DNA of 64,000 bases from Rebecca billardiae RCC1528 (taxonomy: Eukaryota; Protista; Haptophyta). Each line of letters opens with the position of its first letter. The stretch's first letter is position 1. Positions 1,721 through 28,934 of this stretch are shown one piece after another. The notes below the pieces were generated by a model. The model worked only from the letters and a program-made list of their open reading frames with translations, searched no databases and was not told the origin of the DNA. The DNA lies in NCBI GenBank assembly GCA_965240325.2, contig OZ251246.1, positions 558,001 through 622,000 of the forward strand, given 5' to 3'. The position numbers were made by a program, and so were the translations under genes.

Positions 1721-3617
1721 GCGGTTGCCAGGCCCGACCCCGCCCGGTCTGCGGCCATGCGAGCCGCCACGCCGCCGCCACGCACGGGGCCCGCCCGTGG
1801 GCGTCTCAGTGATCTCAGTCTGGCACGGGCGGCTCCGGACCCGGCGGCACCCGCGCGGCGTGAGTTGCGAGTCCGCGCTGGGCTGCCCCGACGTAAATAG
1901 CCGCCTGTCACCAATTAACTATTAAGAACTATATTTATAATAAATTAATATACTTTTTAAAAAAGACAATTATGATTCTCGGACTTGCCGCGAGAGTGAA
2001 TGAGCTGTAATTTAAGGCTATCATCCGGTCGTAATTATTCGTATAAATTATTCCGGGCCGGCCCGCCGGGGCCCGGGCCATGCGAGCCGCGCAGCGCGGC
2101 AGGTGGATCGCGGGCAGCAGCTCAAGGCCGCGCTCAAGCAATAATCCGATCGCGGTGCAGTGGGCCATGCTCTCACTGCCCACCAACGCCGACTTCGTCA
2201 CAGTTCGTGTCGACGATCCGCAGGGCAGAGGGCTTTCGGGCACTGCCGCCGGCCCGTCATTATGACGATTCATGAGTCGTCGGTAATGATGACTGAGTCT
2301 GATGTGTGATGGGCACGGCCACGGCCACGGGCTGGCAGCGCCGGCGGGGCTGGGCACCGCCCCCGGCCTGACCCCGGCACTCCCGCGGCCGCGGCCGCGG
2401 CCGCGGCCGCGGGCGCCCGCGGTCACCGCCACCGGGTCCGGCCTCCGGGTTGGGGAGTACACCGTATACTGATACACTCACTGATACAGAAATCAGAATA
2501 CTGGCTACGTGACCCATGGAGTTACGATCTATGCTCGACGCGACTGCGCCTAGTGCCTCAGGGGCTATCGCCTATCGGACGGCGTGCTGCGCCTCTACGA
2601 CCGCCGCGTGCGTGACGCAGAGAAGTGCACCGCCAAAAATGGCCAACCATCTCACGCATGGTGAAGCTCACCCTGCCAGGGGCAGGTGGCGCGTGTCTTC
2701 AGACTTCAGAGTGAATCAGACGCATTAACTGTGGCTCCATGACCATGGACTATGGACTTAATCGGGAGGGCGGCCGTGACGCGGATGCAGGCCCTGCTTC
2801 TCCACAGGGAACCACCGCCGGTGGCAGCCGGCGGCGCAAGAGAGGTCGGGTGGCGCGCCTACTCGTGCTCCCCCGCTGACCGCCCAGCGCGCAGCGCGCA
2901 AGCCGGCCCCGCCGGTGCGCCCGCCCGCCGTGCAGGGCATGGACGCTGACTGGTGCCGCAGGCGGAACGACGAGCCGAGCAGCACAAATCAGAAGCGGAA
3001 GAAGAAAGCCCCGGCGTGGGAAGCGCGGGCAACGGCGCGACGCCGACGGCCGACGGATTCGTTCTCCATCGAGCCGTCGCTCCTCGGCGAGCCGCGCCAT
3101 CAAGGAACGCCAGGCGACAAGGCGGCTTGGCGGCTTGGCGGCCCGTTCGTTGTCGAATGTCGGCGACCGACACTACCACCAACTACTTTTCATATATATA
3201 TGTCGTTACTAGGGATAGTGGATATGATGCGATAGATGATGTAGATGAATCAGGAGTGGAACGTCAAACTGCGCCGCTTGATGAATGACTGACCCGTCGT
3301 AATCACATCAGGCTGCGCGGTTGCCGGTTGCTCATCAGTCTCAGCGGTCAGGCGAACCCCCTTGGTCAGGCCTGCCGCGCGCACGGAAGGGATCAAAGGA
3401 CTTCGTCGGTTATCAGGCTGATTTCAGGCCCTTGGCGGGCCTTGCCGTGAGGCAATCATACTGAGGGCATTTGATGGCCCTGTCCTTGACTGTACTTCGC
3501 GGGTGGGCCAACTGGTAGTTGGTTAGGTGGACCCTCTACTCGTAGTAATCAGTGGTTCGTCAGCAGAACCTGGATCGCAAAAAGCACTCTTTGCTCGGCC
3601 CGAACCCGCGCCACAAC

Positions 3618-6600
3618 ATGGTCCACGCGCCACGAGAACCCCTCAGGCGGACGGCGATCGGGCCGGAAGCCGGCGAGGCCGACGTGGAGGCCGGATCCAC
3701 GCTGGACGACGACGACACGCTCCTGAGCCCGCGCTTCACCCGCCTCGTCGAGCTCAGCGACGCTGCGCTCGAGGAGGCGTTTGTGGCGCAGATCGGGCTG
3801 CCTGTGCTCTACTGGCGCGTGCGCATGGTGTTCGTGCTGCTCTTCGCAGGCTCGTTGCTCACGTTGGTGGCCCGCGTGGCCACGGGCACCGCCACGCCGC
3901 AGGACATGCTCGTTCGCGGCGCGTGGGCGGCCGCAGCCGTGGGCGGGATGAGCGTGGTCGTGTGCGCCAAGCGAGCGCTGCGCCGGCCGCATGCGTTTAT
4001 TGAGGCGCTGGTGTCGGTGATGATGGGCGTGCTGATGGCCGTCCTCATCGGCAGGGCGAGCGTTGGCGCCGACGCCGACCTGTCCACCCCCGCCGAGCTC
4101 TTCGTCCGCGTGCAGGCCATGGGCGTGTTTGGCGTGTCGGCGCTGCACGTGCGCGTGCGCGCTCTGCTGCCGCTCACCGCCGTCTACGGCGCGGCGAGCG
4201 CAGGGTATTTCGTCTCGCGCGCGGTGGCGGGCGAGCCGACGGACACGACCGTCGTCGTCATCGCCACGATCGGCATCGGGCTCACCGCCCTGCTCGGCGT
4301 GCAGCAGGCGCGCCACGCGCGGCGCGCGTTTGCGTCGGCCGCGCTCACGCGCGCGCTGAGCGCGCAGCGCGCGCGCGAGCAGCGCGCGGCGCAGGAGCAG
4401 GAGCTGGCGCTCTCGTCGGCGCAGGCGGCGAAGGTGGCGCGCGCGCGGCTCACGCGGATGGTGATGCACGACCTCCGCTCGCCGCTCCTCTCCGTCTCCA
4501 ACATCGTCGACGCGCTCGAGGACACTGCCGACGTCGCGCCGGCGACCGCGCTCGCCGACCCGTCGGTTGCTGAGCACCTCGCCTCCATGCGCGTTTGCTC
4601 CGAGCTGATGCAGGGGATCGTGCGCGCCGCCAGCGCCGCGCGGCCGCGCGACGCCGCCGCGCGCACCGCCCCGCGCGGCGCGCGCGCACCGCAGCTCACC
4701 GCCGCGCCGTCGGCTGCCGCGCGCACGCGCCGCGCCGCGCCCGCGCCGCCGCACGCTCGCGCCGCGCCGCGCTCGCGCCGCCTCGTCCGCCGCCTCGCTC
4801 TCTCGCGCACCAGGTGTCGGGCATGCTGGACTTTGAGCGGCTCGACTCCGGGCGGCTCGTGCTCAGCCCGCAGCCCGTCTCCGTCGCGCGCCTCCTCGAG
4901 AGCGTGCGGCGCACCTTCGCGGGCGCGGCGGCCGCGCACGGTGTGGCGCTCCGCCTTGCGCCGCCCTCCGCGCGTCTGGCTGCCGTGCGCGTGCTCGCGG
5001 ACGAGGGCTGGCTTCAGCAGGCGCTCAACGCCGGCGTGTCCAACGCGCTCAAGTTCACAGAGCGCGGCGGCAGTGTGAGCATCGACGCGCGCGTGGTGGA
5101 CGACGAGCCGGACGGCAGGGTGCACAAGCCGCAGCCGCCGCCGTCGCCGCAGCCGCAGCAGCCGCAGCCGCAGCCGCCGCTGCAGCGGCCGCCGCATCCG
5201 CAGCTGAAGCATCCGCGGCAGCTTCCGCCGCAGCCGCAGCCGCAGCCGTCGCCGCAGCCGCAGCCGCAGCCGCTGCCGCTGCCGCCGCAGCCGCAGCCGC
5301 AGCCGCGTAGCCCCGCCAGCACGAGCTCCTGGGCGGCCGCCGTCGACCCTCGCGTGGTGCTTCCCAGCCTGCTGCCCGCCGCCGCCGCGGGCGGCGGCGC
5401 GGCGGACGGCGGCGCGGCGGACGGCGGCGCGGCGGACGGCGGCGCGGCGGACGGCAAGGTGGCTGGCGCGGGTGCACGCGCCGGCGGCGCCGCGCACGCG
5501 GCGCGCGCGCCGCCCGCCGCCGACGCCGCCCTCGCCGCGCCGGTGGTGCGCCTCGCAATCGACGTGGTCGACACGGGCATCGGCCTGACGGCTGAGGAGC
5601 TCGCGGCGACTGGCGAGGGCTCGGAGCCCTTCCAGAGAGTCGGCCTCGGCCAACTTAACGGCGCGGGCGGCTCCGGCCTCGGGCTTGCGATCGCGCGGCA
5701 CGTGCTGCAGCTGCACGGGCCCGGCTGCTCGCTGCGCCTCCACAGCGACGGCGTCGGCCGCGGAACCACCTTCTCGCTCACGCTCGCCCTGCCCGCCGTG
5801 CCACCCGAGGCCTCCGCCGAGGCAGGCAACGACGACGACCGCCGCGGCTCGGCGGCGCCGCCGACCGCGCCGCCGCCCGCGCCGCTGGCGCGCAACGCCG
5901 AGCAGTCGGCGCCGGCGTCGCCGCCCGCGCCCGTGCGGACGCACGTCGTCAGCGGTCCGCCCGGCGGCCGCGCCGCCGCTGGTGCCGAGTCGCCGCTGCC
6001 CACCGCCGCCGACGCGCCGCCCAGCACTGTGCCGTCGCCCTCGCTCGCAGATGTCGTGCGCGCCTCCGCGGCTGCGGCGCAGCAGGTCTCATCGGGGAAC
6101 TACACATGTGCTCACATCAACACGTACGGGACGGCTGGCGGCGTGGCGTTGGGCGCGGCGGGCGGCGGCGGCGTGCGCGCGCTGGCGCGGGACGACGCCC
6201 CCGGCGTGCGCGGCGGCAGCGCGCTCGGCGGCAGCGCGCGCGGCGAGGGCGGCCCAGCTGACGGCCGTGCGCGCGCCCTGCGTCTGCTACACGTCGAGGT
6301 GGGTGGCGCACGCCGCGTAACCGCCGCGTAACCGCCGCGCACCGCCGCGCACCGCCGCGCACCGCCGTGCGCGTGCCCACGCCCCACCCACCCCCGCCGG
6401 GCTCTGCCGCGCGCAGGACGACCGCGTGCTGCGGCGCACCCTCGAGGTCAAGCTGCGCCGGCTGCATGTATCCTATACTTACGCCGAGCACGGCGCCGAG
6501 GGCGTGAAGCGCGCGCTCGACGCGCCGCACGCGTTCGACGTGGTCCTGATGGACAATCAGATGTCAGCGCGCGCGCGCCGGGCGCACTGCGCCGCCCAGC

Positions 6601-6944
6601 GCTGCGCCGCGCCGCCGCGCTCTCACGCCCCGCGTCGCGCCAACGCGCGCCCTCCGGTGCCGTGCGCGCCGGCACGCAGGCCGCACATGACGGGCACGGC
6701 CGCGACGCGCCGGCTGCGCGAGCGCGGGTACCAGGGGCGGATCGTCGGCCTCACGGGCGACCCGGTGGGCTGCCCCGAGCGAGACGAGTTCGAGGCGGCC
6801 GGGCTCGACGCGTGCCTCGACAAGAGCACGCTCGGCATGGCGAGTGTCATCGGCCTCGTGCAGCGCTGCGCCGCCGAGCTGGAAGCAGGCGCGCAGCCCG
6901 TGAGCTCCGAGCTCCGGTCCTGCAGGTCAGACCATCGCATATGA
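3618..6944 (+). CDS. Membrane-bound hybrid sensor histidine kinase (TM region + HisKA + HATPase_c + receiver); exons ~3618-4619, 4814-6298, 6417-6562, 6680-6944
   Basis: Several hydrophobic helices; H-box MVMHDLRSPL; N-box QALNAGVSNALKFT; G1 VVDTGIG; G2 GGSGLGLAI; receiver LLHVE|DD, VVLMDNQ|MP, IVGLTG, ACLDK. GT-AG introns join the motifs in frame. Start codon uncertain. Confidence 0.92.
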
Positions 6945-16450: not shown

Positions 16451-18265
16451 CAGCATAGAGTAGAGCGCCCCTCAGCCTGCCGGCAGAGTGGGGCGCAGGT
16501 GTTTGAAGCAGCACCCGGCGGTTGGTCCTGCGCTCCTGGGCACGGCTATGTACCTGTTGGTCTCATGAATGCGGGGGAATGCCAGCGCTCGCCACGCGTG
16601 CTCAGCCTCTCAGCCTCGCAAAGCAGAGGAGCACTTCATCTGCGAGCTCACACAGCTGTGCCGCTGCCGTCTCCTTGCTGTGACGCGCAGAGCAAGTCGA
16701 GGAGTGTCTGGCGACCACCGGTGCCAGTGCTGCGCCGACAGGTAGATGCCCACCACCCGGCCGCGCCCGTAGCATGGGCGATGGTGAGATGAGTGGCAGC
16801 ACAGCGCACAGCTACGAGCAAGGTTGATGTGCGACGGTGTGGAGGCACGCGTGCTCGCGGCATGCTCCGAGCCCCGTGCTGCGTGCCCCCTGCTGCTTCT
16901 CGCCCTTGGTCGTCTCCTCGTCGATGCCCTCCTCCCCCGTACGCGTGAGCTCCGCGACGCCATCGGGCCAGCCTACCAACGAACAGTGGGCGTGGCGCCC
17001 TGCTGACGGCTGGCTGCCATCGCAAGCCATGCACGCCTGCACACGGCAACAGGGCCGTTTGCGCCCTGTTGCCGTGTGCACGGCCACAGCGGGCCGGTGC
17101 ACACGGCAACAGCAGTGCGAAACCCCCTGAGGGTGACCCCTTTTGCGCCCCAGTGTGCACACGACAACAGGGCGCAAACGCCCCTGTTGCCGTGTGCAGT
17201 CGCCAGTGGCAAACGCCAGACCTTACTGGCCATGCAGCCGTCGCCGCCTGCGCCGTCGGAAAATTCGTTCAGCAGAGTTTTTTGGGTGCAGCGACGACCG
17301 ACGATGACGTTCGTACAGTAATCGTAGTTCATTCACTCGTTCGGCTGCAGGAAGTCCGAAGTCCCAGGAAGCTGCGACGCGCGCCGACCGGCTGCCGACG
17401 CGACGGGCTCACGCCGTCACACGGCCGGATCGGCTGTCGGCAATGCACGAGGAATGGGTAGTGGAGGAGGCCAGCAGCCATGCGAGCTTTTGCGAGGACA
17501 CTCCCTCATTGAAGGTGGTGTTGGCATCACCGCCGGTGCATCATGCTCGTGGCGTCACGTGCGTGCCCGACGTCCCTCGCACAACATACCAAACGCGATC
17601 AGACGCACCGCCGCCGAGGTGGCGCTGTTTTGCATGCGGTCCATTTCGGATACTCCAGCGCGTGCTGCGAAACCGCAGATGGCGACGATTATGGAGGAAG
17701 ACCAAGAAAACACGTCGCGTGAACATGGGCTTGGCAGAAAGCAAAACACGGCGGCAAAAGTTGCAGCCGCCTGCACCGAAGAAGCAGGCCCTGCGATACG
17801 GACACGGCAAGACATGTGGATCCATCAAGAGCCACGCAGCAGTCGGGCGGAAGACAGCACATGCGTCCTCGAACGTTGCACCGTCCAGCTCCGACGCATG
17901 CAGGAACCAACCGGTGGGTATCGTCGGCTCATCATCAGCGCCGGCGGCTGCGTCTTCCGGCTCTGCCTGGTCCAACTTTGTGATGTGGAGGAGGAGATTA
18001 CTCTGATGGACGATATCGAACTGACGATTGCACGAAGCTGTGGTGATGAGGAGTTGGCGATACGCATCACGCTCTTAGCATGCTTTTAGTTTCAGTTGCT
18101 GTCTGTCAGCCACGCTGTCGCCGCGCTCTTCGGAGAGCGTGCGATGAAGGCCCGCGTAGAGTCGGGGGCCCGCCCGCCGCCGCCCGGCAACCTGCCTCAC
18201 CTTGAGCCTTACGCACGTTAAAACAAATATATAATTATTATATAATAAACTGCGTAGTAGCAGCA

Positions 18266-18718
18266 GTAGTACTAACCTCGGCGAGTCCAACTACTACTAA
18301 CTTCGGCGAGTCCAACTACTACTGCTACCAATTTCGGCGAGTCCAACTACTACTAACTTCGGCGAGTCCAACTACTACTAACTTCGGCGAGTCCAACTAT
18401 ACTACTAACTTCGGCGAGTCCAACTACTACTAACTTCGGGGAGTCCAACTACTACTACTAACTTCGGCGAGTCCAACTACTACTAACTTCGGCGAGTCCA
18501 ACTACTACTAACTTCGGCGAGTCCAACTACTACTAACTTCGGGGAGTCCAAGTACTACTAACTTCGGCGAGTCCAACTACTACTAACTTCGGCGAGTCCA
18601 ACTACCACTAACTCAGGCGAGTCCAACTACTACTAACTGCGGCGAGTCCAACTACTACCAACTTCGGCGAGTCCAACTACTACTAACTCAGGCAAGTCCA
18701 ACTACTACTAACTTCGGC
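18266..18718. repeat. 25-bp minisatellite (CTACTACTAACTTCGGCGAGTCCAA)n, ~18 copies
   Basis: Head-to-tail units with period 25 (tactaacttc at 18481, 18506, 18531). No spacers. Confidence 0.95.
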
Positions 18719-20221
18719 CACAACATCATCCACCAGCTGCTGACCAAGAACAGGCTACACCATCGTCCACCACGACCTGCCACTGACCAAGTAGGCGACG
18801 ACATCATCCGCACCAGCTGCTGACCAAGTAGGGGACGGCCTGGCCGACGCCAACATGCTCACTCGCCTTTGATTTCGTACCCATACACTTCCTGGTGGGC
18901 CTGACGACGTCCGGACGACGACAACAACGACATCCGCCATGGGGACCAACATCATCGCGCTCACACCACTGCAACTGCTGCAAGCTTCGACCAGTACCAC
19001 TACAGACGAATCAGGAGAGCTGCGCCCTCGTGCCTGTGTCTTTAAATCATAGAATTAGTACAGATTAATGGCCCTCGCCCGGAGCCCGCGCCGCTGCGGC
19101 CTGCCCGCCAAGGCCGAGCGCGGCTCGCGAGCTGCCAGAGGCAGAGCCAGAGTCGTAACGGTCAACCTGCTGTCGCGCGTCAGCAAGTAATGAGTCACCA
19201 TCGTAATATTCATGCAGAGTCCACTATCCGCACTCGCAGGCACGCAGAACGTATGTTATACGGTATTAAGTAATGTGACCGAATATACTCGATGATGCAC
19301 GATGATGACGCGGATAGATGTATCATGTATGCGTCGTCAGCCGCCATCGTCGGCTACATATATATATGACGAGGCACCGGATAGTGCCCGGAGGCGGCGC
19401 CGCCGGGTGCTGCGCCGCTGCCGCGGCGCGGGCCTTCGATCATTCTCGTCTCAAGATCGACCGGTCTAGTGTCAAAAAAGTGTCATGGCTGACGAACGAT
19501 CGGACTGGCAAGTGCGCTGCTGCCTGTTGCCGCACGACGGCGCCAAGCACAGAGGGCGCCACGTCAGGCATCACGGGTGCGTCCAGTAACCGGTCCACGG
19601 CAGCGCGTATCTGCACATGTACAGGACGGTGTCGACTGTCGTCCTCGCGTAGGGCAGATGGGCACTCGGCGGCTCGCAATCTCGGGGCGGTAGATGCGTC
19701 AATCTCGCCTGCCTGAGCTGTGTGCGTCTCCTGTATTCTAGTGCGCCCCTGCCCATAACTAGCCCAGATCCACAGCACCTGTGCCTGAGGCCCCGCCCCT
19801 GCGCAAGGCTGCCAGGCTGTGCCAGCGCCGCATACCGGGTGCGGAGCAAGCGGCACAGCTGCAGCTCCTCACTCACCAGCGTGACGACGCTTCGCTCGCA
19901 CGGTCGCACCCGGCGTACAGGCAAAGCCTGCCTGGGAGCAGCCCGCCGGGGTCGACCTCGGGCAGCAGCCATACATGCAGGCCAGCACGAGCGGCGGGGT
20001 GGCACCAGTGCCGGCCCCAGCCCGCAAGCGCAAACAGCCGGACGCCCCGGCCCCCGCAGCTGGTGAGACAGCGGACCGCCTCCGGGCAACAGAACCCTGC
20101 CGCCGGCTTTGAGACCGACACGCCACACAGGGGGCCCATATCCCCTGAGGGCCAGGCCTTCTGTGTGATATGCTACCCCAGTCATGACGCTTGATACACG
20201 CCTTCCCTAACCGACAGTGGG

Positions 20222-20512
20222 GCTCCACATTGAGTACATTCCATGGCTACTAACATGGCTCATCCGACATCCTGCCCCGGGCGTGCTGTCGCATCGGCGC
20301 CCAGTCGGAGAGTTCGGACGACGACGTTTTGTGGACGACGGTGGGGCGAGGGCGACGGGCGCTGGCGCGCCGCGAGGCGGCCGCAGCCCTCATCCAGGCC
20401 TCGCAGGCGGGCGGCTGAATGAATCTTCCGACGGCGCCACCATCGGCGACGACGGCTTCGTGGGCGGTGACAGTTGGCGGGCGTCAATCTCTGCGCGTCT
20501 CTTTTTCTTAGT
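20222..20512 (+). repeat. Long partial copy of the dispersed MITE-like family
   Basis: Aligns by eye with ~55710-56020 (gttcggacgacgacgttttgtggacgacggtggggcgagg...ggcggtgacagttggcgggcgtcaatctc). Confidence 0.8.
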
Positions 20513-20525
20513 ACCCCATCCCGTA

Positions 20526-20705
20526 CAGTTTACTATGTTTTAACGTGCACACTTGCTTTAAGGCGTGATTATGGTAAACTGTCCAGAATAGGTGGACGGT
20601 ATGATAGTACTACTACCATCGGCGACGGCTTCATGGGCGGTGACAGTTGGCGGGCGTCAATCTCGCCTGCCTGAGCTGTGTGCGTCTCTTATTCTTAGTA
20701 AACTG
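20526..20705. mobile_element. 180-bp Tc1/mariner-type MITE (complete copy of the dispersed family)
   Basis: Perfect 10-bp TIR CAGTTTACTA (20526-20535) / TAGTAAACTG (20696-20705), with TA on both sides. Confidence 0.7.
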
Positions 20706-20981
20706 TACTTTACTTTTGTCGTAGGCAGTGAGTTTAGGGTTGCCTCTCTGATTAATACTAGCTTCTGGTCTGGCTTGTGGACAAGCTTTGCCGAACCGAG
20801 TTCTGAGTTATGAGTACTTGAGTAGCCTTGCCGAACCGAGTTCTGAGTATCACACGAGTATGATTGTTGGCGGCGGTTGGCATCTTGGCGCTCCACCTGC
20901 CGGCTGCGCACCCGCTTTAGTTACCACCGCCCTTGTAGTTCACGTAGGCACCGGCTCCCGGGCTGGGCGAGTACGCTGTGA

Positions 20982-23900
20982 ATGTGCCCACCACCACGCG
21001 CGGCCCTAGCGGCGCGCGGGCGCAGGCCGTGGCGCGAGCGGCTCCTGTGGATCCAGGCCGAAGCGGGCGATGGGCTCGCGCCGTCGACGACCAGCCGCCC
21101 ACTTGACCCGCGCTACGACATTTCCATCCTCACCTCGCGCTTCCGGAGCGCGGAGGCAAATCGCGAGTACGAGCGCGCGACGGCGCACGCTGAGCACGCG
21201 CTCTACCTCGCGCCGCACGCGGTGCTCACGATCGTGCCGCTGGCTTTCGTGACGATTTACTTCACGCTCGTCCAAGCCACCCTTCCCGACGCGCCCGGCT
21301 CACCGGTGGCCGCGGCTGCCTGCACCGCGCTCGCAATCGCGCTCTCACTGCTGCGGCTGGCATCGCTCGCCGGCCTGGCGTGTGGCCGCAGCTCGCGGCG
21401 CGTGCTGGAGGCGGTGACGGTAGTCGAGGTGTTGTATAGGCTCGGCCATCGCCTGTTCTTCGCCATCCCGCTCGCCATCGCCGCCGACGACTTCAACGTC
21501 GAGCTCGCGGCCCACGTTGAGCTCGCGTGCGCTCCTTGGGAGGTCGCTGTCTTGGCTCGCTTCGAGTACGCGCCACCCGTGGCGGTGCTCGTGGCGCTCG
21601 GCGAGCTGGTCGGGTGGCTGCTCGCGGCGGGCAGCGCGGCGGGCAGCGGGCTGAGCCCGCCGCAGCGCGGCGAGGCCATCGTCGCCTTCTGCGCACTCGT
21701 GACGCTGCCGGTGCTTCTGCTGCACGAGGTTCGGCTGCGCGTTGCGTTTGTGCGCACGCGCTCGCTCGCTGCGCTCCGGCAGGAGGTGAGCCACTTCGGT
21801 ACGCGCACGCGCGGCGGCGCGTGGCGCGCGCGCACCGCCGCCCCCGCCCCGACCGCGCGCGGACGCGCAACACACACCGCCCTCCAACCGCGCGCGCACG
21901 CCGCGCACCGCACCGCGCCGCACCGCACCGCGGCCTCTTGTTGGCTGCGCCACCAGGCCTCAACCATCTGTATCACGCGGCGTCGGCGATCGAGCAGATT
22001 GTGGAGGCGGTCGAGGACGTGCCGTCCGCCTCGTGGCTCACGAAGCCGCTCGCGTCGATCTCCGAGATGCTCGACCAGGTCACCTCGCTGCTCAAGCTCA
22101 TCGTGGATGACTCGCTGGCCGATCGCGAGACGGCGCTCTCAGATTTCAATCTCGAGGGTGCGCGCGCGGCGCGCGGTCGGGGTTGCGGTCTGGGGGGCGC
22201 GTGAGCGTGGGTGCGGGGCGCTCGGCGTGTGCGCGTATGCGCCCGCGCGCGCTCTCCACGCCCGCCCCGCGCCTGACCCCCGCGCCACCCCGCCGCGCTG
22301 CGCCGTGCGTTCACCTCCTCATCACCACACGACAGACTTTGCCGCCCTGCTGTTCCGCGGTCACCAGCACGAGGTGAGCGCGGAGGCGCGGACGCTTCGC
22401 GGCACCTTCGCCTCGTGGGCGGCGCGCTCGATCATCGTGGACGCGATCGCGCACGCGAAGCTGCAGACGCGGGGCGAGGTGCGCGGCTCACTCGCGCTCG
22501 ACGAGGAGCGCTCGACCCTCGTCGTCCGCGTCTCGCATCGCGCCTCGGCCACCGAACTGACCGGTCTCGGCCGCCGGCTGCTCAGGCCGAGTGCCAGCAG
22601 CGCAACGGGCAGCCCCCCGGGCCCCGGCGGCGGGGAGGGCGACCGCGCCGCGGGGGTGCAGGGCGCGCACTTCCGCTCGGCGGTGGCCCTCGCCGAGTCG
22701 GTCGGCGCGACGCTCTCCTTCACCCAGGACGAGTCTGGCCAGTCAGGGCAGTGGGGGCAGTCCGGGCACTGGGCGGTGTTTGAGATGCGACTGCCGGTGA
22801 AGGGCGTTCGCGAGCTCGCGCTGCAGGCGGAGCTGGTGCCGCCGCCGACCGCGCGCCAGTCGATGGGCTCGTCGGCGGAGTGGACCCACAGCGCAGCCTC
22901 CGTGTTCTCACGCCAGCTCTCGGTCGCCGGCGGCGCCGTCGCCAGCCTGTTCACTGGCGGCGCGGAGGGCGGCAGCGGCAACATCGTGTCGCGCTCGGGC
23001 GCCTTTGTGTTTCGTGCGAGGGAGCCACGCGACGGCGGGCACCGTGAGCGCGTCGGGCCGATGCGCCGCTCGGCGGCGGACGCCGGGTGCGCGCGTGTCG
23101 GGGGCGCGTCGACGCCGCCGATGTGGCGCGGCTCGCGAGCCCCCGGACTCGGCGAGACGGCAGCCGACAGCCACGACGGCGCGCCTCCGTCCGCGCCGGG
23201 CCTGGGCGCGCCGAGGGCGGGCGGGGTGGGCCGCAGGCTGGGCGCGAAAGGGATGTCTGCTCCGTGGTCGTTCAGACGGCAGGGGGCGGACGTCTCGCCA
23301 TCGGAGTACGTGCCACACCGCGGCTCCAGGCTCGGCACGCCGTGCTCGCCTTGCTCGCAGACCGGCCCGGCCCCGCGTCTCGAGGAGGCGGATGAGGAGG
23401 CGGAGGCGAAGTCCTTCTGCTCCTCGCGCGCCGGCGCGCTCGAGCGAGGAGCGCCGGATTCCGGGCTCGGGGATTCCGGGCCCTGCGGCGCACACGAGAC
23501 CGGGGCGGCGGGCAGCGTCCTGCCCTCGCCGTCGGCGGCGGCGCTCGACGAGGAGCTCCAGATTCCGGTGCTGAGGCAGCGCGACGAGGCGGCCGTCCGC
23601 CGCTTCGAGGAGCGGCGGCGCAAGAGGGTCGCCGCCGTCGCGCAGTCCGCGGTCGGGAGCGACTTTGAAAGGCTGGCCGGCATGAACATGGCCGGCAAGG
23701 CGCGCTCGAGCTCGGTGGTGGAGGTTGTCGGCTCGCGGCCCGGCGCCGCGGACTCGGAGCGCGCAGCGGCGTGCGAGCGCGGGCTGCCGACGCAAGCGGC
23801 GGCGCGCTCGGAGGGCAGCGCGCTCGTGCTGCGTGAAGCCATGGCGGACTGCTCTCTGCCGCCGGTGCCAGGCGCAATGCTCTATAGCGGTGCGGTCGGC

Positions 23901-24674
23901 GCGCCCGGCGGCGCCGAGTGTGGCGGCGACGGCGGCGGCGGCCACCGCCGTGTTGCCGTCCGCGGCGACGAGCGCGGCGGCGGCGGCGAGCGCGGCGGCG
24001 GCGGCGACGGCGATGGCGGCGGGGCCAAGCCGCCCGTGCCGTCGGTTCCTCCCTCGATCCCTTCGAGCTCGTCGGCCGGCACGGCGCTGCCGCTGCTGCC
24101 CATGCCCCAGAAGCACTCAGGCCGCGACCGGTCGCTCTTCCGCGCGCCGCGCGACGATGCCGAGCGGCAACGGCGCATCCTCGTCGTGCTTGACAACAAC
24201 CTCGACCCGCCGACCTGGGACGAAGGGACGAAGGGGACGGCGATCGCGCGCCGGCTGAAGCGCGAGCTGGGCTCTGACGCAACTGTCGTGATGCACACGG
24301 GCGCGCCGCCCGCCGAGCTCAACGGTCTGCTCGCCACCGGCGTCGTCGACGACGTGACGCTCAAGGACAAGGCGGGCCGCGACCACGTGGCCAACCTGTG
24401 CACGCAGCACGACCTGTGCGTGTTCGTCGACGACATGACGATGATCCTCACCTCGATCGACCTGGCACTGGGCAAGCTGCTCTACGGGAAGGTGCGCTCG
24501 ACCGCGCACGACGGCGGTTGGGCCGCCACCGCCAACGCGCACGTGCGGTACGCCATGTTCAGCGCGCAGGTGGACATGGACGTGCTCTACGCGGTGTGCA
24601 CGCACGAGCTCGTGTTCGATGACAACGTGCTCTTCTGGGAGAAGGGCAAGAAGACGACGCCGAGCGGCTCGTGA
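20982..24674 (+). CDS. Degenerate hybrid histidine-kinase-like membrane protein with an atypical (permuted) receiver; exons 20982-21798, 21957-22157, 22336-24674
   Basis: Multi-TM N-terminus; H-box-like QEVSHF|GLNHL; HATPase-like fold without N/G boxes (IIVDAIAHAK, LVVRVSHR, ALAESVGATLSF, VFEMRLPV); C-terminal receiver elements VVLDNNL, VVMHTG, DDVTLK, CVFVDD. Two GT-AG introns. Confidence 0.75.
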   Translation: MCPPPRAALAARGRRPWRERLLWIQAEAGDGLAPSTTSRPLDPRYDISILTSRFRSAEANREYERATAHAEHALYLAPHAVLTIVPLAFVTIYFTLVQATLPDAPGSPVAAAACTALAIALSLLRLASLAGLACGRSSRRVLEAVTVVEVLYRLGHRLFFAIPLAIAADDFNVELAAHVELACAPWEVAVLARFEYAPPVAVLVALGELVGWLLAAGSAAGSGLSPPQRGEAIVAFCALVTLPVLLLHEVRLRVAFVRTRSLAALRQEVSHFGTRTRGGAWRARTAAPAPTARGRATHTALQPRAHAAHRTAPHRTAASCWLRHQASTICITRRRRSSRLWRRSRTCRPPRGSRSRSRRSPRCSTRSPRCSSSSWMTRWPIARRRSQISISRVRARRAVGVAVWGARERGCGALGVCAYAPARALHARPAPDPRATPPRCAVRSPPHHHTTDFAALLFRGHQHEVSAEARTLRGTFASWAARSIIVDAIAHAKLQTRGEVRGSLALDEERSTLVVRVSHRASATELTGLGRRLLRPSASSATGSPPGPGGGEGDRAAGVQGAHFRSAVALAESVGATLSFTQDESGQSGQWGQSGHWAVFEMRLPVKGVRELALQAELVPPPTARQSMGSSAEWTHSAASVFSRQLSVAGGAVASLFTGGAEGGSGNIVSRSGAFVFRAREPRDGGHRERVGPMRRSAADAGCARVGGASTPPMWRGSRAPGLGETAADSHDGAPPSAPGLGAPRAGGVGRRLGAKGMSAPWSFRRQGADVSPSEYVPHRGSRLGTPCSPCSQTGPAPRLEEADEEAEAKSFCSSRAGALERGAPDSGLGDSGPCGAHETGAAGSVLPSPSAAALDEELQIPVLRQRDEAAVRRFEERRRKRVAAVAQSAVGSDFERLAGMNMAGKARSSSVVEVVGSRPGAADSERAAACERGLPTQAAARSEGSALVLREAMADCSLPPVPGAMLYSGAVGAPGGAECGGDGGGGHRRVAVRGDERGGGGERGGGGDGDGGGAKPPVPSVPPSIPSSSSAGTALPLLPMPQKHSGRDRSLFRAPRDDAERQRRILVVLDNNLDPPTWDEGTKGTAIARRLKRELGSDATVVMHTGAPPAELNGLLATGVVDDVTLKDKAGRDHVANLCTQHDLCVFVDDMTMILTSIDLALGKLLYGKVRSTAHDGGWAATANAHVRYAMFSAQVDMDVLYAVCTHELVFDDNVLFWEKGKKTTPSGS

Positions 24675-24857
24675 GCCAGCGGCTCAGTCGAGGCCCGACG
24701 CGGTCACGGTCGCGCGGCTCGATCGATCGCGGCTGATGCCCACCGCCGTCAGGGCCAGGCGCGCCATCACTCACTCATTCCGACGATGACTATGGTACTA
24801 TAGTACGGCAAGTAGTACGTATCACAGTCGTCGGTAATACTGTCTATAGTAGTACTG

Positions 24858-24958
24858 TAATCTCGCCTGCCTGAGCTGTGTGCGTCTCTTATTCTTAGTC
24901 AACTGTATCTCGCCTGCCTGAGCTGTGTGCGTCTCTTATTCTTATTCGTAAAACTGTA
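24858..24958 (+). repeat. Two tandem short terminal fragments of the dispersed MITE-like family
   Basis: atctcgcctgcctgagctgtgtgcgtctcttattctt...actg|ta occurs twice. Confidence 0.85.
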
Positions 24959-25752
24959 CAGGTGGGTCCAGATGAAGTTGGGGAGTTTTGAAGGGAAGCC
25001 ATGGCGGGCGTGAATGGCCGTCCCACCGCGATCCAAGGCGCGAGTGCAACGTCCGGGACAGGGGGGCGTTGCACTCGCCGGTCGGCGTCGCCGTACGAGC
25101 GCGTGTGCGTGAGTGACAGCTTCCCTTCCGACTTTTCGACCACTCTCACGTCCACGTCCACGTCATCGTGTGACCGGCGCGCGCGAGACTGCGCATGGGA
25201 AGGATGGGCAAGTAGTGGGCAGGATCACCCTTCTGATGGCTGTGTTGACCTCTGGGGCATGCCAGGCGAGGGTGCAGACCTATCAATGTTCTGCCTGACC
25301 CCACAAGTCGTGAGTCTGACGATCAATGTTGGCTACGCGGTAGTCGTGCGACCGCCGTCCGACACGGCTGCCATGCGATTACGCGTGGCGTGTGCGCGCC
25401 TGTCAACGGCGGGGTGATCAACGACCGGCATGGCTAGCAAGCTGGTCAGTGATAGCAGCAGCCTTCTCTGGGACCACGCCGCGCGATTTGGCGACCTCGC
25501 CACGGCTCAATGCCCGTCCAGAGGCACGGACGTGCCGCACTACCTGGCCAGCCACCATCGAAGTACCCGCCACCATCTGGACCCCCCTGTACCGGTGCTC
25601 CGGAGCGACCGAGCTTCCGAACCTTTCGCTTCGCCGAATCGCCGATGCCCGAAGTCGTCGCGTGAATTCGCGACGAGTCATCGAGACGTCAGACGAGGAC
25701 GTCCGGTGCAGCTCGCGCCCAGTCGTGAATCAGACCGCACAGCCGCAGCACG

Positions 25753-26601
25753 ATGATCCAGGAAGGGGCGAAGGTGCCGCAGGTGACGTTCAAGACGCGC
25801 GTGCGCATCCCGGTCGAGTCGGAGAACCCGTTCGACTGGGCCGACAAGACCAGCGATGACTACTTCAAGGGCAAGCGGTGCGTGGCGCGACACGCTCAAC
25901 CGCGCGCCCGGGCGCACACCACCCACGGCGCGCCACGGGCCACGCGGGCTCGCACGCTCACGCCGGCACGCCCGCTCTACCCGCCCTTCCCCCGCCATCG
26001 CACAGCGTCGTGCTCTTCGCTCTGCCCGGCGCGTTCACGCCCACGTGCTCGAGCACGCACCTGCCCGGGTACGAGGCCAAGTACGAGGAGATGAAGGGCC
26101 TGGGGATCGACGAGGTCTACTGCCTCTCGGTGAACGACGCGTTCGTGATGCGCCAGTGGGGGCTGAAGCAGGGGCTGGAGGAGGACAAGACGCCCGGTGC
26201 CAACGGCTTCAAGAAGGTGCGCGCCGGCTCGGCGTGCAGCGGGGAGATGGGCGATCGCGACGCGCGCGCGTCGGTCACACTGACGCGGTCTGCGTGCACA
26301 CGCCTCCACCCGATCCGGTCGCCGATTCCTCCACCCTGGCGCTTCCTCCACTATGGCGCAGGTGAAGCTGATTCCGGACGGCGCGTGCCTCTTCACGCGC
26401 GGCATGGGCATGTCATGCACGTGGGAGAAGGAGCGCGGCTTCGGCGAGCGCTCGTGGCGCTACTCCGCCGTGATCAACGACGGCGTGGTGGAGAAGCTGT
26501 TCGTCGAGGGCGGCGCCGTCACGCAGGACTCTGGCCCGGACCCTTTCGAGGTGAGCGACGCCGACACGATGCTCAAGTACCTGCAGGCGAACAAGAAGTG
26601 A
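25753..26601 (+). CDS. Peroxiredoxin, Prx5/type II family; exons 25753-25877, 26006-26216, 26362-26601
   Basis: KR|VVLFALPGAFTPTCSSTHLPGY, CLSVNDAFVMRQW, GFGERSWRYS motifs. Two GT-AG introns in frame. Confidence 0.95.
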
Positions 26602-27326
26602 GCGCGTGCCCACCACGGCGCTCCGCGTCGGCGTGGCGGCTGGCAGCGAGCTGTCACGCGCCGCCAGGAATGATGCGGGCTTCTGTCGCCACCAGGCGGT
26701 CCAGTTTAGGCACCGGCGTCGCCGCGGAAAGCTCTGACAGCCAGCCAGTCCGCGATCGACGGCTTTGGCCGAATGTTACAGACCATCAATGTCAGTGACG
26801 ACTCAGTGAGCTCTCCATATATATAGCGCTGCTACCCGCCAATTAGGTGGCGTCGATCGTCACATATCGCACATTATTCATGCAGTCGTGGCGGTTATTC
26901 GACGCGGTGCGACGCGCGTGAATTATATAATAATTCGTCGTCGTCCGATAACGCGGCGGTACCGTACCGATTAGTTGGCAGCCGACGAGTCACTCAGTCA
27001 TCGTGACTACTCAGACAGACCGACGACGACGAGACTGCTCTAATTACCCGCGCGGCGCCGTAATATACCGGACCGTATACTGTCATATAGTATAGCCGCG
27101 TCGGCCGAATCCGGGCGGAATCGGACTCAGTCGGCACTGGCATAGCTGCGACGAGTCTGACTCAGTGACTCGTCAGACAGACCGACGACGAGACTGCTCG
27201 ATCTAATTACCTGCCGTAATACCGGACCGTTTTGTCATAGCCGCGTCGGCCGAATCGGACTCAGTCGGCACTGGCATATGCTGCAGCAGTTGTCTGTGAG
27301 TTGATGATGGGGCAATAACTTATCAT

Positions 27327-27332
<6 letters not shown>

Positions 27333-27367
<35 letters not shown>
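27333..27367. repeat. (TA)n microsatellite
   Basis: Direct reading. Confidence 0.95.
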
Positions 27368-27370
<3 letters not shown>

Positions 27371-28934
27371 GTTACATCGCGTCGTCCGCGATTCGCCCGT
27401 GACGAGTGTGTCTGATCGTAATTCGTACATATACGTAGACGCGTGTTTAATAACACTACGTAGACCTACTGCTTGTGCGCCGTAGTACGACTCTGCGCTG
27501 TAATACTCAGTGCAGTACTGCGCTTGGCGGGTTGCAGCCGGACTCCGCCTAGCAGGCGACAGCGTGCCACCGGCGGCATAACGGGATGCCCTTGTGCGTG
27601 CAGTGGACTGCATGGTGCCAGCACTCCGCCTGCCCGGACCTCCTCCGGTCGCATGAACGTACCGTGTAGCTAGCTACAAGCAGTCGGCCCGGAGAGTTGC
27701 ATATCCCAGCTACTACCGTACTCACGACCTAGTCATCAGCAGTGAGAAAAGACAATAACAAGCCGCTGAAAGCTGCTCAGACTTGCAGTCAATTATTCGG
27801 CGCACGGACGGAGGTCGCGCGCGTGGCGCACGGTATATGCTATATTGGCGCGAATTGCGTTGTGAGGCAGCCTCTCCGCTGTAGTCCGGGAACTTGCCGC
27901 GCGTCGCAGCTCGCTTGGTCGGACGGTTATTATAACATGCACGCGAGCGATCGACTTTCCGGAGGACGCGTGGTGTCCTCTCTGCGTCGGTCGATTGAGC
28001 TCAGCTTGTCGCGCACACGTCCGACTTTCCCCGAGTGAGAGCTTGGGTCTGGGTCCCCTTGGAATAACTTGGATGGGTCAGCATCGGCACCGGCCGACCG
28101 CGGGAGCCTGCTGCTCGCGGCACGCCGTCCTAACTCAGCTGGCGGCCGAATCGCATGCATCAGCGATCTACGCCGGTAGTCTACGGTCAGTGACTAGTGA
28201 GAACACTGAGAGTGACATGCCAGATGCAGTAGACCGAGCGCGCACTACCTGTTATTATTGCACTGCATGCATAATAAGCAGCATAAGCCCGGGCCGCACA
28301 CGGACCGGCGGCCCTGGCGCCTGGTTTGAGCGGTTACGGCATCCGCTCGGGCGGCCGTCCGGCGCGCGGACTACGCCCGGGACGGCGGCTGACGGCGGTA
28401 ATATTATTATAATTATAAAGTTATAATACAGCACGGACCGCGCGCGCAGTCCGCGGCGTCCGCGCCCGCGTGCGGGCCCGCCGTCCGAGACCCGGTCCGA
28501 GACGTGACGGACACACGCCGCCCCGGGACCGGGCCATCCGTGGGCCCGGTGCCCCCGTGAGGGCCGGCCACGGCTCGGGCCGCCGCCGGCCGCGCGGGCC
28601 GCGCGCGGGTCCGACCCGCTCGCGGACCTGGACCAGTACTCTCTAAGTGGCTAAGTGACTTGACTTCCCGGGTGAATTGACCCTGATGTAGTATTCACAG
28701 TTACCCGAGTAATTCAAGAGTTCCGAACTCGCGGGACCGTGTCGCCTGTCGGTGTCATATAGTTCATAGCGTGGCTGTGGCTAACTGACGCGTTCGAAAT
28801 CACCGTCTGATGAGCGTCGTTTAAGACGGCAATGACAGTTTGCAGTCTCGCGGACCGTGTACAGAATTCTGAAGTGGTGGCAAGGATGGCCGCAGCCGAT
28901 TCGTGTAAGCCCCGATCGGGTTGCCATTGTGGTC

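Follow-up and report, generated by a model that had tools for sequence, protein, structure and literature searches.

Whether a response-regulator receiver domain can occur in nature with its two halves exchanged is the question raised by a gene on the forward strand of a 64,000-nucleotide stretch of DNA (the window) from the haptophyte Rebecca billardiae RCC1528 (assembly GCA_965240325.2, contig OZ251246.1, positions 558,001 to 622,000). Few signalling domains are as abundant as receivers, whose chain order from beta1 to alpha5 is, to our knowledge, treated as invariant. A preliminary description of the window, made from the letters alone, had proposed that the protein ending at 24674 carries the receiver motifs in rotated order as the result of a natural circular permutation. 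We consider it an evenly balanced call that this C-terminal domain (~24171-24638) is a circularly permuted phospho-acceptor domain derived from a receiver. That it is a natural permutant which still works as a phospho-aspartate switch, with its chain on a HAD/Rossmann-type path, we hold to be tenable, with the balance leaning slightly to the other side.

Motif order and conservation of the C-terminal domain

The gene has three exons and two introns, and the receiver-like domain forms the last 160 residues of its product. All the peptides quoted in the preliminary description were found in + strand frame 0, within 24171-24671. The G+C content at third codon positions (GC3) in this frame was 0.88-0.97 over 24090-24630 and fell past the stop codon at 24672-24674. 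The peptide ILVVLDNNL holds the candidate phospho-Asp codon (24192-24194) and is followed by GTAIARRLKR. Downstream of these are VVMHTG with its Thr at 24297-24299, DDVTLK with its Lys at 24363-24365 and LCVFVDD with an Asp pair at 24429-24434; MILTSIDLALGKL and AHDGGW lie further along. The chain order was Asp, Thr, Lys and then Asp-Asp, so that the beta3-4-5-1 order of residues that had been described was confirmed in the coding frame. The domain divides as follows.

24171..24410, + strand: block A, 80 residues, receiver-like beta3-alpha3-beta4-alpha4-beta5-alpha5, corresponding to receiver profile positions ~50-107
24411..24545, + strand: block B, 45 residues, receiver-like beta1 (LCVFVDD), alpha1 and a putative beta2-alpha2 (KVRSTAHDGGWAATANAH), corresponding to receiver profile positions 8-45
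24546..24638, + strand: tail, 31 residues, conserved (RYAMFSAQVDMDVLYAVCTHELVFDDNVLFW), with strands and a helix predicted at low confidence only
24639..24674, + strand: C-terminal residues, not conserved, and the stop codon (24672-24674)

An exhaustive search of 1.84 billion protein representatives returned a single relative, P0001, an uninterrupted ORF (open reading frame) of 1084 residues on contig L001 (6626 bp) of the Logan assembly of SRR30872636. Word-index protein searches with the C-terminal region of P0001, with the two-sequence alignment and with the N-terminal 450 residues of P0001 found nothing beyond P0001 itself. A metagenome locus scan and a scan with the degenerate DNA pattern H.GGWAATAN.HVR gave no further relatives, and a genome-contig scan with the neighbouring kinase's receiver as the query found nothing. 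The domain alignment therefore consists of two sequences only, the window copy and P0001. Identity between them was 57-61% over the domain and below 30% on either flank of the conserved C-terminal block. By segment it was 65% (24171-24410), 73% (24411-24545) and 45% (24546-24638), which makes block B the best conserved block of the domain. The most conserved stretch was AH(D/V)GGWAATAN(A/T)HV (24504-24545; P0001 1014-1027). P0001 ends 14 residues later in the alignment, and both orthologues stop no more than ~25 residues past the peptide FWE. All five residues of the putative active site were invariant in P0001, in agreement with the earlier claim that the full catalytic set is present.

Receiver resemblance after un-permutation in silico

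We built hidden Markov models (HMMs) from 25 annotated receivers of E. coli K-12, namely a 12-sequence model, a disjoint 13-sequence model and the full 25-sequence model, and ran them with filters off. The domain was un-permuted by moving the 45-residue block B ahead of the 80-residue block A, giving a core of 125 residues. In native order it scored 3.2 bits with the 12-receiver HMM, and the alignment came as swapped halves, HMM positions 61-107 on residues 20-67 and HMM positions 9-36 on residues 85-114; native-order scores across the receiver HMMs were 3-5 bits. When un-permuted at the boundaries given in the preliminary description, it produced a single collinear alignment to HMM positions 8/9-107, with 10.2 bits for the window copy and 12.5 bits for P0001 (HMMER P of 2.8e-5 and 5.5e-6, respectively). 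In that alignment the VDD, the phospho-Asp, the G..h.RRLK pattern, the Thr and the DD...K pattern each occupied their own HMM column. The segment RDDAERQRR, upstream of beta3, aligned as the end of alpha2. The best boundaries, shifted by a few residues, raised the scores to 14.3 bits (window) and 14.9 bits (P0001). The receiver HMM did not match the 31-residue tail, which may be what is left of the beta3-alpha3 of a second receiver copy, or else an extra beta-alpha unit.

The rotated scores were compared with several kinds of control. Shuffled sequences matched the un-permuted score once in 5000 for the window copy and not once in 5000 for P0001. In a scan over all rotations of the 125-residue core, the best cut positions were 72-83, where the junction had been predicted. 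Swapped windows taken from E. coli ORFs other than receivers (n=6934) reached 6.1 bits at most, and among swapped six-frame windows of the 64-kb window and L001 (n=11650) only the neighbouring kinase's receiver and the domain itself scored 8 bits or more; the ~14,000 control windows handled alike stayed at or below 7 bits. When one block was held fixed and the other was replaced by shuffled or real substitutes, 0 of 3000 per kind of substitute reached the real score. Six E. coli HAD proteins and flavodoxin scored -1.6 bits or less with the receiver HMM in every rotation. With the 25-receiver HMM, the un-permuted window copy scored 9.6-14.8 bits and P0001 8.4-11.9 bits, as against 3.9 and 5.4 bits in native order and no more than 5.7 bits for controls. 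The window copy still reached 7.6-13.5 bits un-permuted with the disjoint 13-receiver HMM.

The hhalign probability was 42% for the un-permuted order (P 2.6e-4, 98 columns) versus 2.5% for the native order. Smith-Waterman comparison with the C-terminal part of the neighbouring kinase's receiver gave p ~3e-4 for block A of the window copy. NCBIfam returned one weak response-regulator match in the first half (E 0.1, 12.3 bits) that covered positions 70-113 of the 146-position profile, the expected alpha3-beta5 region, and language-model features gave weak leads (0.83-0.84) to response regulators. By these controls the receiver resemblance exceeds chance, yet it is small and model-dependent. The tests support the rotation moderately and do not amount to proof.

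Predicted fold and competing explanations

We modelled the domain by AlphaFold with the two-sequence alignment, which gave a predicted local distance difference test score (pLDDT) of 59 and a predicted TM-score (pTM) of 0.59, with the first 90 residues at 70-79. The model ran in the order strand ILVVLD, helix, strand ATVVMHT, helix, strand DVTL, helix and strand LCVFV. The D, T, K and DD residues were placed at or just past the C-terminal ends of these four consecutive strands, within the 70-79 range, and the beta1 strand was modelled at pLDDT >70, while confidence past model residue 92 was <50. A single-sequence run (pLDDT 41.6) was too poor for use; the CVFVD strand was seen in both runs. 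The Foldseek, VIA and atlas searches with the model all returned Rossmann-type domains. HAD P-domains and hydrolases were at or near the top (2voy_I, the CopA P-domain, Z 7.4; 2pr7 Z 7.0; 6cgj Z 7.0; HAD clusters of the atlas at TM ~0.52), followed by NAD(P) Rossmann domains. Three PDB searches listed 50 matches each, none of them a CheY-like or flavodoxin-like chain, and the atlas search with the second half alone gave no usable match. The model thus appears to be one alpha/beta sheet domain of Rossmann/HAD-type order, the strand order being taken from the fold matches. The single (beta/alpha)5 fold expected in the preliminary description was recovered in so far as AlphaFold built one alpha/beta sheet domain; the matches were to Rossmann and HAD chains and not to CheY, and beta2-alpha2 was of low confidence.

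A flavodoxin-like 2-1-3-4-5 sheet that is cut before beta3 acquires the 3-2-1-4-5 Rossmann-type connectivity found in HAD cores, and in HAD enzymes motifs I to IV follow the order Asp, Thr/Ser, Lys and acidic pair. Since a cut before beta3 yields a Rossmann-type core, the fold result is what a permuted receiver predicts. The same modelled fold would equally fit an unrelated HAD-like domain.

Several results weigh against a permuted receiver. Pfam at E<=10 returned zero Response_reg matches, whether the query was the whole ORF, the domain, one of its halves or the corresponding parts of P0001, and the domain fell short of the curated model (gathering score 30.2 bits). By comparison, the two exon pieces of the neighbouring kinase's receiver matched Response_reg 6-52 (16.6 bits) and 53-100 (15.0 bits) in Pfam, in the normal order that had been claimed for it. 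The prediction that Response_reg would hit the domain as two halves in swapped order was therefore borne out by our own unfiltered E. coli HMMs and not by curated Pfam, which detected neither half. Sequence and profile searches of the PDB found no receiver and gave chance-level matches only (phosphoheptose isomerase, E 1.4; DDX23, E 0.47), and the exhaustive search of the 1.84 billion representatives returned P0001 and no receiver. The positive scores were all only 10-15 bits with small home-made HMMs, in the twilight zone, and the best boundaries had been picked post hoc. P0001 scored only 3.2-4.5 bits with the disjoint 13-receiver HMM, which is noise level. Smith-Waterman comparison with the neighbouring kinase's receiver was not significant for P0001, whose block A is unlike that of the neighbour, or for block B. 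The most conserved stretch, AH.GGWAATAN.H, sits where receivers usually vary, and the conserved 31-residue tail is left without an explanation. The supposed beta2-alpha2 (KVRST) was not modelled with confidence. The model is of middling quality because the alignment has two sequences, and all fold matches had Z <8, a level that indicates a shared arrangement rather than a family. Taken as a proposal, natural circular permutation kept the collinear un-permuted alignment and the cut at the predicted junction on its side; against it stood the silence of Pfam, the failure of P0001 with the disjoint HMM and the HPt and HAD readings that follow.

One such reading, which we regard as unlikely though it deserves attention, is that the protein is a decayed kinase with half a receiver (beta3-alpha5) followed by an unrelated HPt-like or helical tail, in which FVDD resembles beta1 by chance. 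P0001 had a weak Pfam Hpt match at 986-1016 (profile positions 4-34, E 0.06-0.19, 12-14 bits), which also counts against a permuted receiver, and our own four-sequence HPt HMM gave ~4 bits (P ~0.003). The invariant His of AH.GGWAATAN falls in the phospho-His register, the block that bears it is the best conserved part of the domain, and AlphaFold confidence was lost (<50) beyond model residue 92. The window copy, however, had no Pfam Hpt match and P0001 did not reach the PF01627 gathering score of 24.6 bits. The H-x-x-K-G signature was replaced by H-D-G-G-W. The domain resembles HPt (PF01627) in the weak block B match of P0001 and in the position of this His, but differs in having no predicted four-helix bundle and in that the start of the matched segment is predicted to be a beta strand; both AlphaFold runs made CVFVD a strand within the confidently modelled part of the sheet. 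A lone beta3-alpha5 half would be unable to fold as a receiver. In addition, three real receiver-HPt kinases gained only 3.3-5.2 bits when their best downstream 45-residue window was set ahead of beta3-alpha5, versus 7 and 10 bits for the adjacent block here.

An independent origin, in which the domain is a Rossmann-type domain of a HAD-like or unknown family and the Asp/Thr/Lys/Asp-Asp residues at the strand ends are convergent, seems to us quite improbable. It would account for the best structural matches, HAD P-domains and hydrolases and then NAD(P) Rossmann domains, and the residues do follow the HAD motif I-IV order, with the Lys 22 residues ahead of the Asp pair. Although related only non-sequentially, HAD and CheY are known to have the same Mg2+ and phosphate site (Ridder and Dijkstra 1999, as cited in PMC10400377). 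No HAD model of Pfam or NCBIfam matched the native sequence at E<=10, although no rotation would be needed for a collinear alignment. Our own four-sequence HAD HMM gave -1.2 and 0.1 bits, which is a weak test because the HMM also misses OtsB. The DxDx(T/V) of motif I is L-D-N-N-L-D in both orthologues. The E. coli HAD proteins stayed at or below -1.6 bits in any rotation, whereas the rotated domain scored 10-15 bits; the beta5 segment G-x-x-D-D/E-V-T-L/I-K fits the receiver signature G-A-D-D-Y-L-T-K, the alpha3 signature is receiver-like and the host protein is kinase-like.

A very divergent receiver in normal order (ILVVLD as beta1, TVVMHTG as beta2, CVFVDD as beta3 and YAMFS as beta4, with an inserted beta-alpha unit) is highly implausible and was rejected. 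RILVVxDNN does look like the usual beta1 of hybrid kinases, FVDDMTM like the D-x-x-M-P of beta3 and MFSA like the T/S-A of beta4, but the receiver HMMs never picked the collinear alignment and split the native sequence into swapped halves at 3-5 bits, the Lys needed after the last strand is not conserved (EKGK vs EPRE), and none of the three PDB searches had a flavodoxin- or CheY-like chain among its 50 listed matches.

The domain was then set beside known systems. With the receiver (PF00072, CheY-like) it shares the same five types of active-site residues, each at the C-terminal end of a strand, and the signatures h-h-h-h-D-x-x-(M/L), G-x-x-h-h-R-R-L-K, h-h-h-h-T-(G/A) and G-x-x-D-D-x-x-x-K. 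It also shares the C-terminal position on a histidine-kinase-like protein and, after rotation in silico, the collinear alignment to HMM positions 8-107. It differs in its order, beta3-4-5-1-(2) versus 1-2-3-4-5, and so does not have the flavodoxin-like 2-1-3-4-5 chain order. Its beta3-alpha3 loop is six residues longer than that of the neighbouring gene's receiver, it has the extra conserved tail of 31 residues, and its predicted connectivity is of the Rossmann and not the flavodoxin type. With HAD phosphatases and the P-domain of P-type ATPases it has in common the order nucleophile Asp, Thr/Ser, Lys, acidic pair and a predicted core of the 3-2-1-4-5 type. Unlike these, it is without the DxDx(T/V) motif I and without a visible cap, squiggle or flap, and its Lys- and Thr-strand signatures are of the receiver type. 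Circularly permuted GTPases (YlqF/YjeQ/YqeH type) provide a precedent for natural motif rotation in a P-loop alpha/beta signalling domain and were among the fold matches (1t9h Z 7.2, 3h2y Z 6.9, 2yv5 Z 6.7), but they are of another superfamily and chemistry and match only at the level of the common alpha/beta arrangement. On the model, the domain would be likened to the receiver in its predicted working and to the HAD core in its topology. Neither formal class fits because there is no Response_reg match and the order is wrong for a receiver, and because there is neither a DxDxT nor a HAD profile match.

Host protein, proposed mechanism and implications

The surrounding DNA of the window is GC-rich and eukaryotic, and its introns are short and of the GT-AG type. 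On the + strand, frame 0 stays open between 20982 and the stop codon at 24672-24674. By phase, GC3 indicated coding in frame 0 over ~21000-21800 and ~22300-24650 and in frame 2 between these. Upstream of the domain the gene was resolved into the following parts.

20982..21798, + strand: exon 1, with a putative start codon, an N-terminal region of about five hydrophobic (membrane) segments and, at its end, the start of an H-box (...EVSHF(G)); placed by GC3 phase, the donor GT at 21799-21800, a hydropathy scan and the uninterrupted SHFGLNHLYHA of P0001
21799..21956, + strand: intron 1, GT...AG, 158 nt, with a shift from frame 0 to frame 2; splicing restores the P0001 peptide
21957..22157, + strand: exon 2, DHp-like helices (GLNHLYHAASAIEQ...LKLIVDD...DFNLE), with the GC3 peak in frame 2, collinear with P0001 268-333
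22158..22335, + strand: intron 2, GT...AG, 178 nt; the junction NLE-D-FAAL fits LLDFAAL of P0001
22336..22800, + strand: start of exon 3, a degenerate region resembling a histidine-kinase ATPase, 49% identical to P0001 over 67 residues
22801..24095, + strand: linker of low complexity, Ala/Gly/Arg/Ser-rich, ~430-480 residues, with high GC3, not conserved

The gene model was confirmed because the intron-free ORF of P0001 reads straight across both junctions. L001 has no introns at the two intron positions of the window gene and carries called genes on the opposite strand at both sides of the orthologue; the contig may be a transcript assembly, or it may come from the genome of a relative with few introns. 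BLASTP of the window protein against P0001 found zero conserved islands in the linker. Since the linker is not conserved between the orthologues, no N-terminal receiver half is hidden there, and a hidden upstream half was rejected on this ground. Long ORFs are open in the linker on both strands and in several frames, given the GC-rich DNA. The preliminary description had allowed that additional exons might restore two normal tandem receivers. This was rejected as well, as no receiver piece of at least 4 bits was found in any frame of 18000-28000 or of L001, a search that took in 5 kb to each side and the whole of L001, and as both orthologues end soon after FWE.

The H-box SHFGLNHLYHA keeps its His in both orthologues, within the DHp-like segment. 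HATPase_c gave a weak Pfam match to the ATPase-like region of P0001 only (17.6 bits, E 0.005), and Pfam on the window copy of this region (22336-22800) gave zero matches. The N-box Asn and the G1 and G2 glycine motifs could not be recognised by eye in either copy (22336-22800; P0001 330-480), and from its sequence this ATPase region appears to be a pseudo-enzyme. Judged by these motifs, the host is a degenerate membrane protein resembling a histidine kinase, and with its H-box and weak HATPase_c similarity it is the expected setting for a receiver.

For a circularly permuted receiver, we infer from the sequences the homology to receivers, a route by duplication and all that concerns phosphorylation, as follows. 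The chain would begin at the phospho-Asp strand (beta3) and continue with the Thr strand (beta4), the Lys strand (beta5) and alpha5. It would then pass to beta1 with the acidic Mg2+-binding pair, alpha1, probably beta2-alpha2 and the 31-residue tail. The most likely origin would be a tandem duplication of a receiver in which the first copy lost its N-terminal half and the second its C-terminal half, so that the first kept beta3-alpha5 and the second kept beta1-alpha2 and a remnant, the tail. The tail and the helix-like RDDAERQRR upstream of beta3 would be leftovers of the duplication. The putative active site would bring together Asp (24192-24194), Thr (24297-24299), Lys (24363-24365) and the Asp pair (24429-24434); it is predicted to bind Mg2+ and to be phosphorylated on the first of these residues. 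The phosphoryl group would probably come from the conserved His in the DHp-like segment of the same protein (SHFG). Since the ATPase domain looks dead, loading of this His would depend on another kinase or a phosphotransfer protein acting in trans.

Three other features of the window were recorded. The neighbouring hybrid histidine kinase gene occupies 3552-6941 on the + strand. Its H-box is clear, it has HATPase_c motifs, and its normal receiver is interrupted by introns; the first lies within beta1, with its acceptor immediately upstream of 6417, and the second in the beta3-alpha3 loop (~6563-6680). The second intron is in frame and stop-free and is hence read through as false protein. About 180 bp past the stop codon of the permuted-receiver candidate, in an AT-richer 3' flank, a unit of ~43-47 bp (ctgta(a)tctcgcctgcctgagctgtgtgcgtctcttattctta) occurs twice in tandem at 24855-24945. 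A peroxiredoxin-like gene was recognised by eye at 25878-26601 on the + strand (VVLFALPGAFTPTCS..., with a second exon KLIPDGACLFTRGMG...EKLFVEGG); the reading frame changes across at least one intron, which lies between ~26100 and 26350.

A full-text literature search for natural circularly permuted receiver domains returned incidental mentions only and none that described one. If the reading of a permuted receiver is true, this would be the first natural example found in such a search. It would place the CheY-like and HAD-like phospho-aspartate folds one permutation apart and provide a natural link between the two topologies. It would also put the alpha4-beta5-alpha5 output face in mid-chain, which should alter the coupling between the switch and its partners. 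Moreover, it would account for the failure of domain annotation to detect such modules in algal kinases, and it would show how much rewiring the receiver fold tolerates.

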